A DNA stretch of 14,483 nucleotides, from the NCBI GenBank assembly GCA_000388065.2, contig KB932206.1; one strand, written 5' to 3'. Source of the stretch: Fonticula alba ATCC 38817. Taxonomy: Eukaryota; Protista; Nucleariida. Both the position numbers and the translations under genes were made by a program. Below the pieces are notes generated by a model, which made no database searches, was not told the DNA's origin, and saw nothing but the letters and a program-made list of their open reading frames with translations. This document shows positions 5,453 to 14,404 of the stretch, piece by piece (the first letter of the stretch is position 1; each line of letters begins with the position of its first letter).

Positions 5453-5931
5453 GTGGCAGATGTCCGACTGGCGGGAGCTCCCTTCCCCTGCCTCTTCCTC
5501 TCCTCCCCTTCCCCTCTTGACCTTGTTCCCTTTTTTTCCTCCCCCCCCCCCATTCCGCCCATTTCCGCTGCTCTCGTGCGCGTCTTCCGTTTGTCCGGCG
5601 GGCCGCGGGTCGGCGGCAGTGTGACATGGTGTGCTGCGTGCAGAGGGGGCCCCCTGTCCCCTTTGCCCGGTGCGCGCGAGCCCGCGCTCCGGCGCCCGAG
5701 CCGCCGAGGGCGTGGCCGAGGCGCACCCCAATAGAATTCCACATGATGAAATGCAAGAGGCCCCTGCTACGGGCCGGCCTCCGCGGCCGTAAGAGGACCG
5801 GGGGGCCACCCCGGTATCCGAAGGGGGCAGGTGCCCTTTCATGTCCCCCCCGGACGTGCCGGCCTCTTGCACGGTATGTGTTCGGCCCCTGGCGGGCTCT
5901 GACCGCGCGACAGGGAGGGGGGGGGGGGGGG

Positions 5932-6398
5932 NNNNNNNNNNNNNNNNNNNNNNNNNNNNNNNNNNNNNNNNNNNNNNNNNNNNNNNNNNNNNNNNNNNNN
6001 NNNNNNNNNNNNNNNNNNNNNNNNNNNNNNNNNNNNNNNNNNNNNNNNNNNNNNNNNNNNNNNNNNNNNNNNNNNNNNNNNNNNNNNNNNNNNNNNNNNN
6101 NNNNNNNNNNNNNNNNNNNNNNNNNNNNNNNNNNNNNNNNNNNNNNNNNNNNNNNNNNNNNNNNNNNNNNNNNNNNNNNNNNNNNNNNNNNNNNNNNNNN
6201 NNNNNNNNNNNNNNNNNNNNNNNNNNNNNNNNNNNNNNNNNNNNNNNNNNNNNNNNNNNNNNNNNNNNNNNNNNNNNNNNNNNNNNNNNNNNNNNNNNNN
6301 NNNNNNNNNNNNNNNNNNNNNNNNNNNNNNNNNNNNNNNNNNNNNNNNNNNNNNNNNNNNNNNNNNNNNNNNNNNNNNNNNNNNNNNNNNNNNNNNNN
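5932..6398. other. Assembly gap (467 N) beginning at a poly-G run
   Basis: Run of N; its content is unknown. Confidence 0.98.
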
Positions 6399-7580
6399 GG
6401 GGCGTGCCAGCCGGCAGGGGTGTGATTTGCCGCCCGGCCACTGGCTGCTGGCAGATGGCGGTCTGGCGCCGGGGCGGTCGATGGGTGAATGGCTCGCGCG
6501 AGGCAGCCCCTCGAGATCGGGGTCAAAGCGCCGGCTAGCGGGGCCTGGCTGTGGCCATAACCGGGTGGGAGGTGCTCCTGCTGCTTGTGCGGCGGGCGCA
6601 CCGGGGCCGGTGCATCCCGAAGCATGGCCGCATGCGGGGGGGTGTCTTTTTCCTATATTTTTTCGCGTGCCTCAGCGGCCATCACATTGGCGCGGACCAG
6701 GCGCGCGGGGCCGTGCCGCTGTCGAGTGGACATGCCTCGGCCGGCGTGAGCGGGTGCTCGGCGCAGGCGGGCCTCTGATCGGCAACCGGGGGGGGGGGGG
6801 GGGGACAAGGCCCACATCGACTGGCGACCGGGAGGGCAGTCCGGACAGGCCCGGCTCCGGGATGGTGTCGGGCATGGTGGCGTCATCTGGGTCCGGGCGA
6901 CTGACGCACGGTCCCCACCCGGACGGGCGGGGGGCCCCTCCTTCGAGAGCCGGCGAGCCGTCCTCCGGAGTGTGTCTGTCCCTCGGGAAGCCGGTCCCGT
7001 GCGGGCGGCGTCTCGGGGCCGAGCGCGCCGCCGGCGGGAATCCTTGCCGCTGCGCCGGATCCAGTGCAGCGGCATGCGGCTCGGCAGGCAGCCGGTCTGT
7101 GTAGATAACCCTCCCTTCCTGTGGGGCCTGACCGGAGCCGGGACAGGGCCGGCAGCCGGCCAGGCCGGGGGTGCACGTTTGCCGGGCCGAGGCCGGCCCA
7201 GTTGGCGGGACCCCACGCGGGGGGCCATGCCAGGGCCCAACACCGACGCCGGGTCCTCCCGAGAGGCAGGCACCGGGGTCCGGTGGCCGCGCCGAGATGT
7301 CCTCTTCCGTCTGGGGGGGGGGGCCCGCCGGGGGCCCCGGGCCTTGGTGGGGGCCCCCCCGGGGGGGGCGGCGGCCGGATGTGCCCCCCCCCCCCCCCCC
7401 CGGGTGGGAGTGCCTTGTCGTGGGCCACGCCATATGGCCAGAGTGGCTGCCCTGTCGCTCGGTGCGGCAGGCTCCCGCCCGGGCGTGTGGGCGATGGGCC
7501 GGGGGGCGAGGCTGAAGCCGACCCGCCGCGGCAAGAGCGCAACGAACAAAAGCCGCGGCGGGGACCCTCCCAGCAAGCGT

Positions 7581-7652
7581 GGGAAATTAGTCTAGTGGTA
7601 TGATTCTCGCTTAGGGTGCGAGAGGTCCCGGGTTCGATTCCCGGATTTCCCC
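7581..7652 (+). tRNA. tRNA-Pro, anticodon AGG
   Basis: The cloverleaf has acceptor stem GGGAAAT/ATTTCCC, anticodon arm CTCGC-TT AGG GT-GCGAG and T arm CCGGG-TTCGATT-CCCGG. C73 discriminator is as in eukaryotic tRNA-Pro. An oligo-T terminator follows. Confidence 0.97.
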
Positions 7653-7774: not shown

Positions 7775-7848
7775 GGCCCCATAGCTCAGTTGGTTAGAGC
7801 GTCGTGCTAATAACGCGAAGGTCGTCAGTTCGATCCTGGCTGGGGCCA
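7775..7848 (+). tRNA. tRNA-Ile, anticodon AAT
   Basis: Acceptor GGCCCCA/TGGGGCC, D arm GCTC-AGTTGGTTA-GAGC, anticodon arm TCGTG-CT AAT AA-CGCGA, T loop TTCGATC. T5 terminator at 7856-7860. Confidence 0.97.
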
Positions 7849-8240: not shown

Positions 8241-8244
8241 GAAT

Positions 8245-8318
8245 TGACCACGATGCGGCTCGAACACACAACCTCCTGATCCGTAGTCAGGTGCTCTATC
8301 CAATTGAGCTACGCGGCC
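8245..8318 (-). tRNA. tRNA-Arg, anticodon ACG
   Basis: The minus strand reads GGCCGCGTAGCTCAATTGGATAGAGCACCTGACT ACG GATCAGGAGGTTGTGTGTTCGAGCCGCATCGTGGTCA. The anticodon stem is CCTGA/TCAGG, and there are several G-U pairs in the acceptor and T stems. A T5 terminator lies at 8240-8236. Confidence 0.95.
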
Positions 8319-8520
8319 ATGGGAAGCAGGCGGGACTGCGGGCATAAATGGCCGCGGATGTCGGCAGCTCCACCGGTTATGGTTCACGCCTGTCCCCGCC
8401 ACCGGGCCCCCGCCCGGGGCGCAGCCCCAGCCCGAGGCGCGGGCCGCTGGCCGGCCAACCAGCGGAGGAGCCCCCCTGGCCGGGCCTGGGTGCCGGGGCT
8501 TGTCGGCGGGCATGAGCGTG

Positions 8521-9018: not shown

Positions 9019-12000
9019 CTACGGCGGCAGGGCCACCCCCTTGAGGCGGAAGTTGAAGCGCGTGCGGCCCGGCCGGAAGAGCCCGCAGGCGACCGGGGCG
9101 CTATACTCGTCGAAGAGGAGCTCCGGCGAGAAGACCAGCGCCCCGCCGGGGGCCGCGAAGGCACGCCGCTCCAAGAGGACCATGCTGCCGTCCGGGAAGG
9201 CGGTCTCCAGGGCGGCCTGCAGGTCGCGCTGTGACAGGGCCACGCTGGCCGGCGGCGCGCGGGTGCCTGCCGGCGGGGCACCGGGCTCGGCCGGCGATGC
9301 GGCCGGTGGCCCGGCTGCAGGGGGCGGGTCGGCCTCGCCGGCGCCGGCCTCGCTTCCGGCCGGGTCGAGGCTCACCCGCATGTGGACCACGTCCAGCTGG
9401 GTGGGCGCCTCCGAAAAGTACAGGCTGGTCATGAGGGTGTCCTCGGCCCGGATGAACTGGCCGAAGTCCGCGCACACGCGGATGACCCTCGGCGTGTCGT
9501 GCGCATCGGCCAGCCGGGCAACGAACAGCCGGCCGCGGCAATCGAAGAACAGGCACTCGGCCTCGAGCTGGCAGCGGGACGTCTCGCGCAGCGACTGGAA
9601 GAGGTCGCGCGGGAGCATGAGCCCGGCGTACAGGGGGCTGGGCGTCGGCACGAAGTCCGTGTCCAGCACCATCGTCGAGCACCGTCGGGACAGGGCCAGG
9701 CCGAAGGGCCGCGGCACCAGGGTCAGCCCGTAGTCCGAGGTGTCGAAGTGGATGCGCGTCACCCCGGGGACCACGACACCGGCCTTGACCGGCTCCCGGT
9801 TGCCGCCGGTCATGTGCGATGCCGTGAAGTTGATGAAGAAGGGCCCGAGCGTCGAGGAGACAAACTGCCAGCGGCGATTGGAGGGGGTTTCCCGGTCAGC
9901 CGGCCGGCAGCGGCCGCGGGCCACCGGGCGCCGATCGGCCACGGGGATCCCCACGGGTTAGGGCATGTTTCCGGGCGGCGCCGACAGGGGCCAGGGAGGG
10001 GGCCGGGGCAAAGGGCAGCATCGACGGCGCCCGGGGCGCACCTGCATCAGTGGGATGGCGCCTCCCTTGGGGAGCTTCGCGAAGAACATGCGCTCGAGCA
10101 GCCCCGGCTCCAGGTCCGGAAGCCGGTACTCCCCATCCGAGGTGATGTGGCATGTGAGGGTCGAGAGCACCGGCGTCTGGGTCGGCGCCAGGTGGAGGAC
10201 GGTCATGTAGCGCTGGAGGAAGTTCATCCCCACCAGCACGTGGTTCGGCAGGAGGTCCAGTCTCGGGTTCTTCTGGGGCCTGGTTCGGGACCGATGGAGC
10301 GGACGTGTCCGGGCGCGCGGGGAGGGGCGTGTTACAGGGAGGTGCGGCTGGGTGGCGGGGCGCAGCAGGCGGGGGGCGGGGTGGAGGGCGGGCTCCGGGC
10401 GGTGGGGTGCACGCGAGGGGAGGCTGCCCGCCAGGGAGGCACGCGCTCGCGGCCCGACGCAGCGGGACCCCGGCCACACGGGGGCCCACCCCGAGGGACG
10501 TACACAATGCTGCCCTTGTCGTTGACCAGGATCTCCGGCCCGGGCTCCAGAAAGTAGGTCTCCAGCGAGATGAATGTCTCTTCCGGCACCATGAGCGAGT
10601 TGTGGGACACCTTGCTGGGGCTGATGTTGGTGGACACCGGCAGGCGCAGGTCCCGGCCCAGCAGCGGCAGCTGCAGCAGCACCGTGTGCGGCGGTTCCAT
10701 GATTCGGAAGCCCTCCTTGATGGCGGCATCGACAAATGTGAAGGCCGGGGTCTCGCGTGTGAGCAGGTGCCCGGACTTCAGCGGCTGCAGGTAGGCATTC
10801 ATCAGCCGGTCCACGCGCATGCTCATCAGCACGCCCGTCACCGAGATGTCGAACTCCTGCAAGGGGGCATACCCCCGCGGGCCGGGTACACCATGCCCCG
10901 GGCCGGGTGGCGGCGGGCTTCCATGCGTCAGTCGGGGCTCCCCGCTGGCCGAGGCCGCTCGACCCCCCCCCCCCCCCTTCTCCTGGCCCGCGCTCCTTAC
11001 GCACCTGTCCCACGGTCAGCACGGAGTCGTCCAGCTTCTGCAGGAACTCCCGCACCAAGTCCCCGTGCTTGGCGTAGTGCGAGAAGGACGTCTTCTTGAA
11101 GAGGACCAGCTCGATCAGGCCCACCTGCGCCGGCGAGGCGGTGGCCGCCGCCCAGAAGCAGGTCTGCTGGCTGAATATCCGCTCGAAGTCCCGCCGGTTG
11201 AGGATGATCTGCTCGTCCGACAGCGGCCTCTTCGGGTTCGGATCCGGGCTGGGGGTGGCGTGGGCGCGGCCGCACCCGCGGCGGGGAGGCGCATGTCAGA
11301 CACGGTAAGCCACATGGAAGCCACACACATGCACACATTCAGCACCCCCACGCACTAGATCATCAGCAGGTGCCCGCCCCACTGGAGGAAGGCGTCGGTC
11401 CCGTCCGGCAACCGGTGGCGCAGGCGTCGATAGACCCCCGGGCTGACGGCCGCCCAGCCGGCCCGGAAACTGGCCAGCTCGCTGGCGACCGCCGCCAGGG
11501 ACAGATGGCCGCCGTCCTCCTCGGCCCCCGCCACCGCGGGGAGCTGGACAAGCAGCCAGTGGCCGCCAGGGGCCGAGGGGTCTGCCCGGCCGGCGGTCGC
11601 TGGCCCTGACAAGTTGGCGGCCGCCGGCGGTGGGGGATCGAGCGCGGCAGCCAGGGGGGCCTCGTCGGTGGAGACCGTCAGCGCCTCGACTCGGCCGCCG
11701 CCCGGCGGCAGGCGCCCAGCCGGCCGCGGCACGTCCGGCTCCCCGAGCCAGCATATCCGCCGGACGATGCAGCACACGTCGACGCCTTGGGAGCTGAAGG
11801 AGAGCGGCTGCGAGAGAAAAGAAAAGGGGCCAGGCGACATGTCAGAAGGCGGGCGCCGCATGGCGGATCGGGGGCCCGGGTCATGCCCGCCCGGACACGC
11901 ACCCGGTCCAGTCGCATGGTGGCGTCGCCGTGCGCCTGCAGGAAGTCCAGCTTCAGGCGCTCCAGCGGGATGTCCACCGGCTGGCCTGAGGCACCCTCCC

Positions 12001-14404
12001 GGACGAAGGACACCTCGACGGACTCGGCCACCGGCAGGTCCGGCGCCGGGGACAGGACCATCGGCTCCAGGCCGAAGCCGCCCAGCATGTCCAGGTCCCG
12101 GGGATGGATCGCGGCCCCGAACCGCGTCACTCGGTCGCTGGCACTGGGGCGGGGGGTCAGTTCACGCGCATGCGTCTCTTTGGAAGGGCCACGGGCGAGG
12201 AGTACGCACCGGATGTCGAGGTGCGCCCCGCCGCTGGTGAAGCGCACGACATCGACCGGGCAGCCGCTCGGGCTGGCGATGCGCCGGAAGGCCGCCGGCG
12301 ACACGAGGACCGTGCGCTCGGTGCCGGGCGTGCCCGGGGGCAGGGGCTCCGGGGCCAGCATGACCACGCCCGGGTCCTCCGCATCCGGCCAGATGGCCAC
12401 CAGGTGGTTCTGGTCGGCCGGCAGGCCGCGCGGCGTCTGGACATAGAGGACGGTCGCCGCGGGCATGGATGTGCGCTCAGGAGCGCCATGGCTCTCGAGC
12501 GTGGGGGCAATTCGGGCTGCAGCCGCGCTGCCGAGCTGAGCGGGGCCGGGTGGGAGGCCGCGCGTCCCCAGTCGAGCCGGCCTGGGGCAACTCAGCTCGG
12601 ACGCATGGCGGCCCGGGACACCCGGATGGGCCTTGCTGTGGCGGCTAGACTCGCCACAGCCTCGCCCGCCCGGGCCTGGCCTCGTGGCATCCTCCGCAGG
12701 CAGCCGGCCACTTGGCGCCTTTCGGGCATGGAGATGAGCCGGCGTCGGGGCGATGCACACGGGCCGCGGCTTCGGGGGCTCGGGCGGCAGTGGCACCGGG
12801 GCGGACGGCGGGGCAACCCGGCGGCGTTCGTCCGCAGATGCCACCCCCACGAGGACATCGCGGAAGTCCCGGTCCATGAGCCGCTTCACCCGGATCGAGG
12901 CATGCGGCTCCTCGAGGTGGACGATCTGTCGTGGCGGGGGGTCAGGGCGGGATCGCACGAGAGCAGGCCGGTGGGGCTGTCGGGACGCACGTCGCCCACG
13001 CGCAACGGCGCGCCGGCCAGCTGGCTGAGTATCCGCTGGCGCTCATGCGGACGAAGCCCCTGGGGGCTGTCGACCCACGCGACGGCCAGGGCGGGCGGGG
13101 CGTCGCACAGGGTCAAGCGGGCCGGGCGCCCGTGCAGCTCCATCCCCAGCGACGCGAGCAGGCGCCGGTCCGCCCGCAGATATATCCCAGGTGGGGTCTT
13201 GCGCTGGCAAATACTGATGAGAGGATGTCAGTCCATGCCGGGGGAACGGCCGCATCCGGAAGACCGGCCCCCCCCGAAGCGCGGGCTCACAGCGCACCGG
13301 ATCTGGAAAACGCGCTTCTCATGCGCCGCGTAGAAGGGGCCGTCCGGGGCGCCCGGGCGCCATGCCGCCAGCAGCCGGGCCACCGGGCCGCCGGCCGGGG
13401 CGAGCAGCACATCCAGGTTGGGACCCGGCGCGAACATCGCATGGACCATGTGGTGCTGCTCCGGGAGGGGCGACGCGCCCGGGGCCAGGACCGTCGGGCC
13501 GCCCGGTGGTGCCAGGGCCACGACCACCGGCGCGTCCAGCAGGTCCATGCTCGGCCCGGCGGTCAGCACGATCCGCGTCGACGGGCCGATCAGGCCGCAT
13601 GGGGAGACGCCCCCGCGGCCGCCGGCGACGGCGGCGTCCGTACGGAGCTCAACCACCGCCAGCTCCAGCGCGGGGGCCCCCTCGGTCGGCAGGGTCAGCG
13701 CCAGTGGCAGAACCTGCCAACGGCCAACCCGGCGGGGAACATGGTCAGACACATGTGCAACATAGAGGATAAAGACACCCGGCGTCCTGGTCGCACCTCC
13801 GACGCGTGCAGCAGCAGCCCGTGGCCGGCGAGAGCCGCCTTGGCCGCGGCCTCCAGCGCCGAGAACGGGATCTGGTGCGGTCGATCATCCACGGAGGCGG
13901 CCACACCCACCGGGCGCACGGCGAAGCAGGCCGCCTCCAGCGCCGGCGGCAGGAACCGCTGCACTTCCAGCACGCCCGCCCTCCCGAAAGGAAAGAGCCG
14001 ATAGAATTCGTCGCCGGGGAGAACGCAAAAGTCGGCGGCCCGGGGATCCGGGCTGGGGGGGGGGGGAGAGAGAGAAAAAGAGCAGGTCGCGCCCGAGTGT
14101 GAGCGGCCCCCGGAAAGGGACGGCAGCAGCGGCGGAGGAGGCACACGTACCGCGCCCGGAAGAGCCGGTCATTGGCAGTCAGGAAGATGTGCTCGCCGGG
14201 GTGAGCCCCGGCCGCGGCGGCCAGCTCGTCAAAGAGCCCAGGGGCGATGAGCAGCTGGCTCGGCGAGGTGTAGCCGCCCTCGAAGAACCGGGCCCCCGGG
14301 CACACCGGCCAGGCCGCCGTGTCCAGGGGCAGATCCACCCCGCCGAGGCGGAGCAGTCGCCGGGGCGGGGCCGATGTGGGGGAGCCCGCCGCGCGGAAGG
14401 CCAT
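9019..14404 (-). CDS. Uncharacterised 1434-aa protein made of six tandem CDC48/p97/NSF N-domain-like modules, no ATPase domain; 10 exons (14404-14151, 14052-13797, 13713-13298, 13213-12991, 12925-11903, 11807-11356, 11248-11005, 10856-10504, 10279-10042, 9864-9019)
   Basis: Nine introns have GTGCG/GTACGT donors and YAG acceptors, several with a visible CTGAC branch point. They join the ORF-track fragments into one 4305-nt frame ending at TAG 9021-9019. The gene model is well supported. The product call rests on recurring motifs that resemble p97 N-domain segments (by eye). The start at 14404 is near the window edge, so further upstream exons cannot be excluded. Confidence 0.72.

Follow-up and report, generated by a model that had tools for sequence, protein, structure and literature searches.

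The N-domains of the NSF, p97 and PEX AAA+ machines are adaptor- and substrate-docking modules, which have so far been known as single or paired copies preceding an ATPase in the same chain, and as a lone copy in Ufd1. The N-domain of NSF docks alpha-SNAP, and that of p97 has a cleft between its subdomains where UBX, VIM and SHP partners dock; the ligand bound by Ufd1 is ubiquitin. The gene considered here, H696_04152, belongs to Fonticula alba ATCC 38817, a nucleariid and member of the sister lineage to fungi. It is located on the minus strand of a 14,483-nucleotide stretch of contig KB932206.1, which is referred to below as the window, and its product very probably comprises six tandem, diverged N-domains of the Cdc48/NSF type, carried in one chain that possesses no AAA ATPase.

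Each of the described systems departs from this arrangement. NSF, which works as a hexamer, has a single N-domain joined to its D1 and D2 AAA rings, whereas H696_04152 has six N-domains and no AAA domain, and its modules are only 8-15% identical in sequence to the NSF N-domain (NSF-N). Similarly, p97/Cdc48 couples one N-domain to its D1/D2 ATPase, in contrast to six copies that lack an ATPase and remain below Pfam thresholds. The UT3 domain of UFD1 resembles the modules in having the N-domain fold without an ATPase of its own, but it is present as a single copy that is followed by Npl4-binding and Cdc48-binding motifs, rather than as six modules, and no match to Pfam UFD1 was obtained in H696_04152 or in the family proteins. 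PEX1 and PEX6 provide the sole earlier-described case of consecutive N-domains that was found: a survey of the Cdc48 family reports two in both Pex1 and Pex6, each pair then followed by AAA domains, and no protein with more than two (PMC5070193). Pex6 N1 is reported to bind Pex15. In comparison with these peroxins, where the two copies always precede AAA domains, H696_04152 has six, and no sequence link between them was found. A literature search returned no paper that names H696 locus tags or a six-N-domain architecture, and a preliminary description of this DNA likewise knew of no such protein. The family of H696_04152 is therefore a hexa-tandem, ATPase-less and lineage-specific architecture of a known domain, for which no earlier description was found.

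A six-module repeat in H696_04152

The gene extends from an ATG at 14404 to a stop codon at 9021-9019 (14404-9019, minus strand) and is divided into 11 exons; once its ten introns are removed, a single frame is open from start to stop. Splicing with the acceptor at 12144 gives a product of 1412 amino acids (aa), identical to the database protein XP_009496311.1, which is annotated as a 'hypothetical protein'. The introns carry uniform GT[AG]CG...CAG signals and, in most cases, a CTGAC branch site. A scan of the sequence revealed neither a transmembrane-like segment nor an obvious signal peptide, in this protein as in its paralogues, indicating a soluble product. The preliminary description had counted ten exons and 1434 aa, figures that are replaced by those above; its partition of the product into six modules of ~200 aa is borne out by in-register profile links, shared introns and structure models, its module coordinates fall within about 70 bp of the boundaries given here, and 17 of the 17 peptides that it quoted are present in the order stated. 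The six modules (M1 to M6), together with a linker and a loop, are arranged as follows.

13528..14404, minus strand: M1, aa 1-232, boundaries approximate; aligns in register by hhalign with M3, M4 and M6 (P 1e-4 to 4e-4); introns coincide with those of M3 and M4
12833..13527, minus strand: M2, aa 233-414; hhalign to M4 at 1e-5
12464..12832, minus strand: basic linker rich in Pro, Arg, Gly and Ala, aa 415-537 (123 aa, pI 11.2), in frame between M2 and M3
11583..12463, minus strand: M3, aa 538-777; matched to M4 by hhalign over 191 columns (P 1.7e-6), with the two intron positions in common
10698..11564, minus strand: M4, aa 784-987; hhalign to M5 at 6e-9; by sequence the most NSF/p97-like module
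9736..10697, minus strand: M5, aa 988-1174; hhalign P values of 6e-9 with M4 and 8e-8 with M6
9022..9735, minus strand: M6, aa 1175-1412; no introns; core pLDDT (predicted local distance difference test) of 80-92 in an AlphaFold2 model
9232..9366, minus strand: low-complexity loop in M6, about aa 1298-1342, between barrel and beta-clam; pLDDT mostly 42-57, no predicted secondary structure

The six-module repeat is real, despite the modules being mutually only ~15% identical. No repeat was detected by self-BLASTP of H696_04152, and module profiles of four sequences gave marginal values in hhalign (P about 1e-4). When module profiles were built from 12 family members and compared pairwise by hhalign, all six modules were linked in register, over approximately 130-190 aligned columns and with P values of 6e-9 to 4e-4. 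The pairs concerned are M4-M5 (P 6e-9, 175 aligned columns), M5-M6 (P 8e-8, 159), M3-M4 (P 1.7e-6, 191), M2-M4 (P 1e-5, 146), M1-M6 (P 1.2e-4, 194), M1-M4 (P 2.9e-4, 172) and M1-M3 (P 3.7e-4, 165), the least similar by sequence of the module pairs tested being M4-M6 (P 0.01). Among 36 reversed-profile controls, the best value between different modules was 0.07 and the best overall, from a self-reversed pair, was 0.0019. A stacked alignment of 49 modules exhibits a common pattern, composed of LL[VI][AS]P..[FY]..L, PG..[IV]FL, L...PDP.P, [IV].L...[DF]..[LI]F, VE[VL], [FL]L..L....L.VGQ, R[VL]..L and G.[LV].PG.TR..F.

The exon structure follows the same periodicity. The phases of the ten introns are, in order, 2,0,2,0,2,0,2,0,2,0, such that each of M1 to M5 is interrupted first by a phase-2 intron and, about 75-86 codons further on, by one of phase 0. 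Both introns occupy identical columns of the profile alignments in the pairs M1-M4, M3-M4, M4-M5 and M1-M3, and for M2-M4, M3-M5 and M1-M5 this holds for the second intron, the first being shifted by a few columns. M6 is intron-less, as is its counterpart in the paralogues H696_04153 and H696_04154, where the last high-scoring segment pairs are contiguous. The positions and phases shared by M1 to M5 therefore indicate that the array grew via tandem duplication of a three-exon unit. The exons and introns are listed below.

14151..14404, minus strand: exon 1, aa 1-84 plus 2 nucleotides, first psi-loop half of M1; then intron 1 (14150-14053, phase 2)
13797..14052, minus strand: exon 2, second psi-loop half of M1 and start of its beta-clam; then intron 2 (13796-13714, phase 0)
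13298..13713, minus strand: exon 3, remainder of M1 and first barrel half of M2; then intron 3 (13297-13214, phase 2)
12991..13212, minus strand: exon 4, middle exon of M2, the first exon base, 13213, completing the codon split by intron 3; then intron 4 (12990-12926, phase 0)
12210..12925, minus strand: exon 5, end of M2, the 123-aa low-complexity linker and first half of the M3 barrel; then intron 5 (12209-12144, phase 2)
11903..12143, minus strand: exon 6, middle exon of M3; then intron 6 (11902-11808, phase 0)
11356..11807, minus strand: exon 7, remainder of M3 and first barrel half of M4; then intron 7 (11355-11249, phase 2)
11005..11248, minus strand: exon 8, middle exon of M4 (PDPNPKRPLSDEQIILNRRDFERIF...TVGQ); then intron 8 (11004-10857, phase 0)
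10504..10856, minus strand: exon 9, remainder of M4 and first barrel half of M5; then intron 9 (10503-10280, phase 2)
10042..10279, minus strand: exon 10, middle exon of M5; then intron 10 (10041-9865, phase 0)
9019..9864, minus strand: exon 11, end of M5, the whole of the intron-less M6 and the stop codon; modelled directly, with matches to N-domains

The acceptor at 12144 was chosen for exon 6 because the paralogues read 'RPSDRV' at this point. The linker between M2 and M3 was found only in H696_04152 and is missing from all aligned paralogues; it contains no GT[AG]CG donor and so is not an obvious missed intron, and it probably represents a recently acquired insertion or a disordered linker instead. 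The M6 loop is likewise shortened or missing in paralogues. The region of exon 7 (11358-11807) is also represented by P0012, a Logan read-assembly fragment of 125 aa that belongs to the same 90% cluster and differs at a few residues, reading NSSG for NLSG and AKFPAGRAAV for ASFRAGWAAV, with the variant closer to the family consensus F.PGRA.V. These differences suggest that strains are polymorphic here, that a further copy arose very recently or that the reference contains errors, and the contig of P0012 reads into the intron and is therefore derived from genomic DNA, not from mRNA.

Predicted N-domain fold and absence of an ATPase

Assignment of the modules to the N-domain fold rests on predicted structures because the sequence matches stay below threshold. 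Two AlphaFold2 models were obtained. The first, of the paralogue H696_05766 (13-row alignment), is poor overall, with a mean pLDDT of 48, and its module 4 reaches 70-89; in this module the order of elements assigned by DSSP is beta-beta-alpha-beta-beta-beta-alpha-beta, then beta-alpha-beta-beta-beta-beta-beta. In a Foldseek search of the PDB with this model, the best 50 matches listed were all N-domain-bearing chains of NSF, Sec18 or SPATA5 (E from 2e-6, about 195 columns, probability 1.00), with template-modelling (TM) scores of 0.44-0.48 against the isolated N-domains 1QDN, 1QCS and 1CR5. The second model, of exon 11 of H696_04152 (the M5 tail and all of M6, 9-row alignment), has a mean pLDDT of 67, a core at 80-92 and a predicted TM score (pTM) of 0.61, and the order of its elements is the same as in module 4 of H696_05766. 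Its best 50 listed PDB matches were N-domains of NSF, Sec18 and p97 only (E 2e-7 to 6e-5, probability 1.00), with TM scores of 0.49-0.52 against isolated N-domains, and in a viral structure library it matched the N-termini of giant-virus AAA ATPases and UFD1. Thus the models predict, for at least M6 and one module of the paralogue, the fold of an N-domain, in which a double-psi beta-barrel precedes a beta-clam; the paralogue module is, on the basis of the model, probably M4. Structure prediction of each module followed by Foldseek was among the checks proposed in the preliminary description, and the four p97 segments that it had quoted for comparison all occur in the p97 N-domain according to the PDB.

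Over both models, the closest structural match is the N-domain of NSF/Sec18 (1QCS, 1QDN, 1CR5; E 2e-7 to 1e-4, probability 1.0, TM about 0.45-0.52), in which the order of strands and helices is equal. The likeness to the N-domain of p97, Cdc48 and VAT lies in the fold, with 5KIW and 3QQ8 among the matches of M6, and in sub-threshold signals for CDC48_2 at the expected place in M2 and M4. These signals consist of an E value of 0.049 (13.7 bits, against a cut-off of 22.4) in M2 of the paralogue P0022, over the stretch equivalent to '...SQLAGAPLRVGDIVHL', and, at the corresponding position of the M4 consensus, of an E value of 0.077 (13.1 bits). In addition, the M4 profile shows a faint similarity to NSF-N, in register (P 0.0014, with reversed controls at 0.08 or worse), which includes the correspondence of FSVGQ with LTVGQ and places REFLQKLDDSVLTVGQEFDI opposite a 20-residue stretch of NSF-N. 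The NSF-N sequence used in these comparisons was verified against 1QCS, and the p97-N sequence is 100% identical to PDB entries. Profiles of the other modules did not match the sequences of NSF-N or p97-N significantly, and a profile of all 49 stacked modules improved neither the link to NSF-N (P 0.079) nor that to p97-N.

Several results weigh against the assignment of all six modules to this fold. A Pfam scan of the full H696_04152 protein at E up to 10 gave no match, searches of PDB sequences by phmmer and with a four-sequence family profile returned noise only, and no module meets the curated Pfam gathering threshold for CDC48_N (PF02359) or CDC48_2 (PF02933), the former never being matched in the family. 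The models derive from shallow alignments of 9 and 13 rows, their agreement with known structures is moderate (TM about 0.5, root-mean-square deviation 6-8 A), and the Foldseek output for H696_05766 does not name the matching module. M6 is the one module modelled directly from H696_04152, M1, M2, M3 and M5 being assigned by transitive homology to M4 and M6. Nevertheless, M4 and M6 are the least similar of the pairs tested and yet both have the N-domain fold in the models, which, added to the transitive homology, speaks for this fold in each of the six modules.

The chain carries no recognizable motor. No Walker A motif (G-x4-GK[ST]) is present in any frame of the window, no AAA Pfam domain was found in 12 of the 12 aligned family proteins, and the sequence up to 10 kb from the second cluster of family genes (H696_05766/05767) is likewise free of Walker A motifs. 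An AAA gene lacking its N-domain was sought at both clusters examined, and none was seen adjoining them. As judged from its sequence, H696_04152 has no AAA domains and for that reason falls outside the Cdc48 AAA family. The stop codon directly follows M6, and the paralogues likewise end a few residues past M6, the stop being conserved. Downstream, a pyrimidine-rich tail precedes a tRNA gene that forms the boundary of the locus.

8244-8319, minus strand: tRNA-Arg(ACG), identified by ARAGORN, 700 bp past the stop codon

At the other end, the stop codon of the neighbouring paralogue lies about 320 bp before ATG 14404, and M1 opens with the first strand that the other modules also have. The close upstream stop, this first strand and the downstream tail and tRNA together indicate that no exons are missing at either end. 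The absence of a Walker A motif, the end of the reading frame after the sixth module and the distance of ~700 bp to tRNA-Arg had all been noted in the preliminary description, and each is confirmed by these data.

Paralogues and genomic surroundings

A HMMER profile, run exhaustively against 1.84 billion representative proteins with a cut-off of E 1e-3, identified 19 family proteins, 11 of these with E < 1e-30, and nothing outside the six-module family. The members matched were H696_04153, 04154, 05766, 05767, 06118, 06122, 06123, 06124, 05299, 05952 and 06295. Every strong match (E < 1e-30) that was looked up is from F. alba, and the weaker matches are short fragments, several of them from unnamed Logan read assemblies. 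The family thus has about 12 members, H696_04152 included, and in this search was seen in F. alba only. Its members form head-to-tail clusters (04154, 04153, 04152; and 05766, 05767), and the paralogues are 24-43% identical to H696_04152 and collinear with it, module by module, from M1 to M6. As paralogues this diverged have the six-module plan and exon structure in common, the architecture predates the gene duplications and has been retained, and its retention argues for a function.

Several truncations among the paralogues are due to assembly or annotation, not biology, as they coincide with gaps. The annotated H696_04153 lacks module 1, and M1-like coding sequence is situated directly upstream of its annotated start (9743-10276 of L001); runs of N at 11116-11483 and 13159-13836 of L001 interrupt the same gene. 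The UniRef name of H696_06122, 'Cleavage/polyadenylation specificity factor A subunit C-terminal domain-containing', looks unsupported, a Pfam scan at E up to 5 having found no such domain. The neighbour of H696_05766/05767, at 23689-24519 of L002, is a protein kinase of very great length (2166 aa) that has a Pkinase domain, and the approximately 10 kb upstream of these two genes contain assembly gaps and neither called genes nor family copies. A viral origin of the family is unlikely, given that what was matched in the viral library were the usual AAA and UFD1 N-domains of giant viruses and that introns and composition are of the host type.

The window has a G+C content of about 73%. An apparent 'low-G+C island' at about 5500-6700 (38% G+C) is merely an assembly gap of N at 5933-6398, which is flanked by long G-runs on either side. 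Three tRNA genes (Pro, Ile and Arg) occur within about 740 bp directly downstream of H696_04152, the first two of which are given here.

7581-7652, plus strand: tRNA-Pro(AGG), identified by ARAGORN
7775-7848, plus strand: tRNA-Ile(AAT), identified by ARAGORN

Further away, a coding region at about 300-2990 on the plus strand has a third-position G+C content of about 90%, and residues 566-605 of the open reading frame at 29-2305 are short-chain dehydrogenase-like (PDB 3RD5, E 1.6e-11; Pfam adh_short sub-threshold).

Possible roles of a motor-free N-domain array

It is tentatively proposed, as the likeliest role, that the H696_04152 chain would act as a soluble, ATP-independent scaffold for multivalent docking, a reading adopted because N-domains elsewhere are ligand-docking modules. 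The six modules would either provide a gain in avidity or gather several partners, and different modules and paralogues may have diverged in specificity. With modules only ~15% identical to one another and shared residues that appear core-like, it is improbable that the six sites are equivalent, and specificity may also vary among the roughly 12 paralogues. A point against the scaffold is that, in the stack of 49 modules, the residues conserved between modules look like core positions rather than a shared ligand site. The full-length model of H696_05766 has a pTM of 0.34 and no arrangement of the modules relative to each other can be read from it.

A related scenario, which we regard as rather doubtful, retains the fold and assigns it to another class of ligand, such as ubiquitin or ubiquitin-like proteins, phospholipids or glycans, so that the family would constitute a lineage-specific set of receptors or recognition proteins, possibly tied to the aggregative life cycle of Fonticula. 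Phospholipid binding has been reported for the PEX1 N-domain, other double-psi barrels, e.g. expansin and barwin, bind glycans, and the structures matched in the viral library include UFD1 N-domains. The restriction of the family to one lineage, its tandem clusters and its fast divergence (24-43% identity) are, moreover, typical of recognition or conflict genes. However, extracellular recognition is difficult to reconcile with the absence of a visible signal peptide or membrane anchor, the modules have no specific similarity to Ufd1 above that to NSF, and the proposal overlaps with the docking scaffold, from which it differs in the ligand only.

Less probable still is a decoy or regulator, in which the six N-domains would mimic the N-crown of an NSF or p97 hexamer and soak up or pre-assemble SNAPs, UBX proteins or Ufd1-Npl4, thereby tuning those ATPases. 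The number of modules is exactly six and is apparently kept in the paralogues whose assembly is complete, the closest structural matches are NSF-N, ahead of p97-N, and M4 bears the faint NSF-like signal in its sequence. Set against this, no evidence was found for a ring arrangement, the full-length model being uninformative on this point at the pTM given above, the low mutual identity of the modules makes six equivalent sites unlikely, and about 12 fast-diverging paralogues would be odd for a regulator of conserved housekeeping ATPases. It is improbable, on this analysis, that the protein is an ATPase-free pseudo-hexameric platform that captures or pre-organises SNAP-SNARE or UBX/Ufd1-Npl4 complexes, with about 12 paralogues of diverged specificities.

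Finally, an artefact of compositional bias in a 73% G+C genome, of fused genes or of a decaying pseudogene family, to which the silent self-BLASTP, the weak four-sequence profiles, the many spurious long open reading frames of the G+C-rich window and the truncation of several paralogue models might point, is very hard to sustain in view of in-register profile matches far better than the reversed controls, intron positions and phases that coincide over five modules, a frame open through 11 exons with ten canonical splice sites, a collinear six-module plan kept between paralogues ~40% identical, two predicted models with confident cores, and paralogue truncations that coincide with assembly gaps.

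The practical weight of these observations is limited, as the family is known from one little-studied organism. They provide a first structural annotation for a dozen 'hypothetical' Fonticula proteins, and the matching intron positions offer a clear case of repeat growth via duplication of an exon unit. Were the pseudo-hexameric platform to prove true, it would represent a new way to regulate or bypass AAA+ unfoldases. More generally, a conserved chain of six N-domains without an ATPase, expanded into a family, implies that the N-domain is usable as a free-standing repeat scaffold, and the family would be a natural tool for the study of motor-free roles of N-domains, including avidity, the sequestration of cofactors and, possibly, the ATP-independent handling of ubiquitin-like folds.

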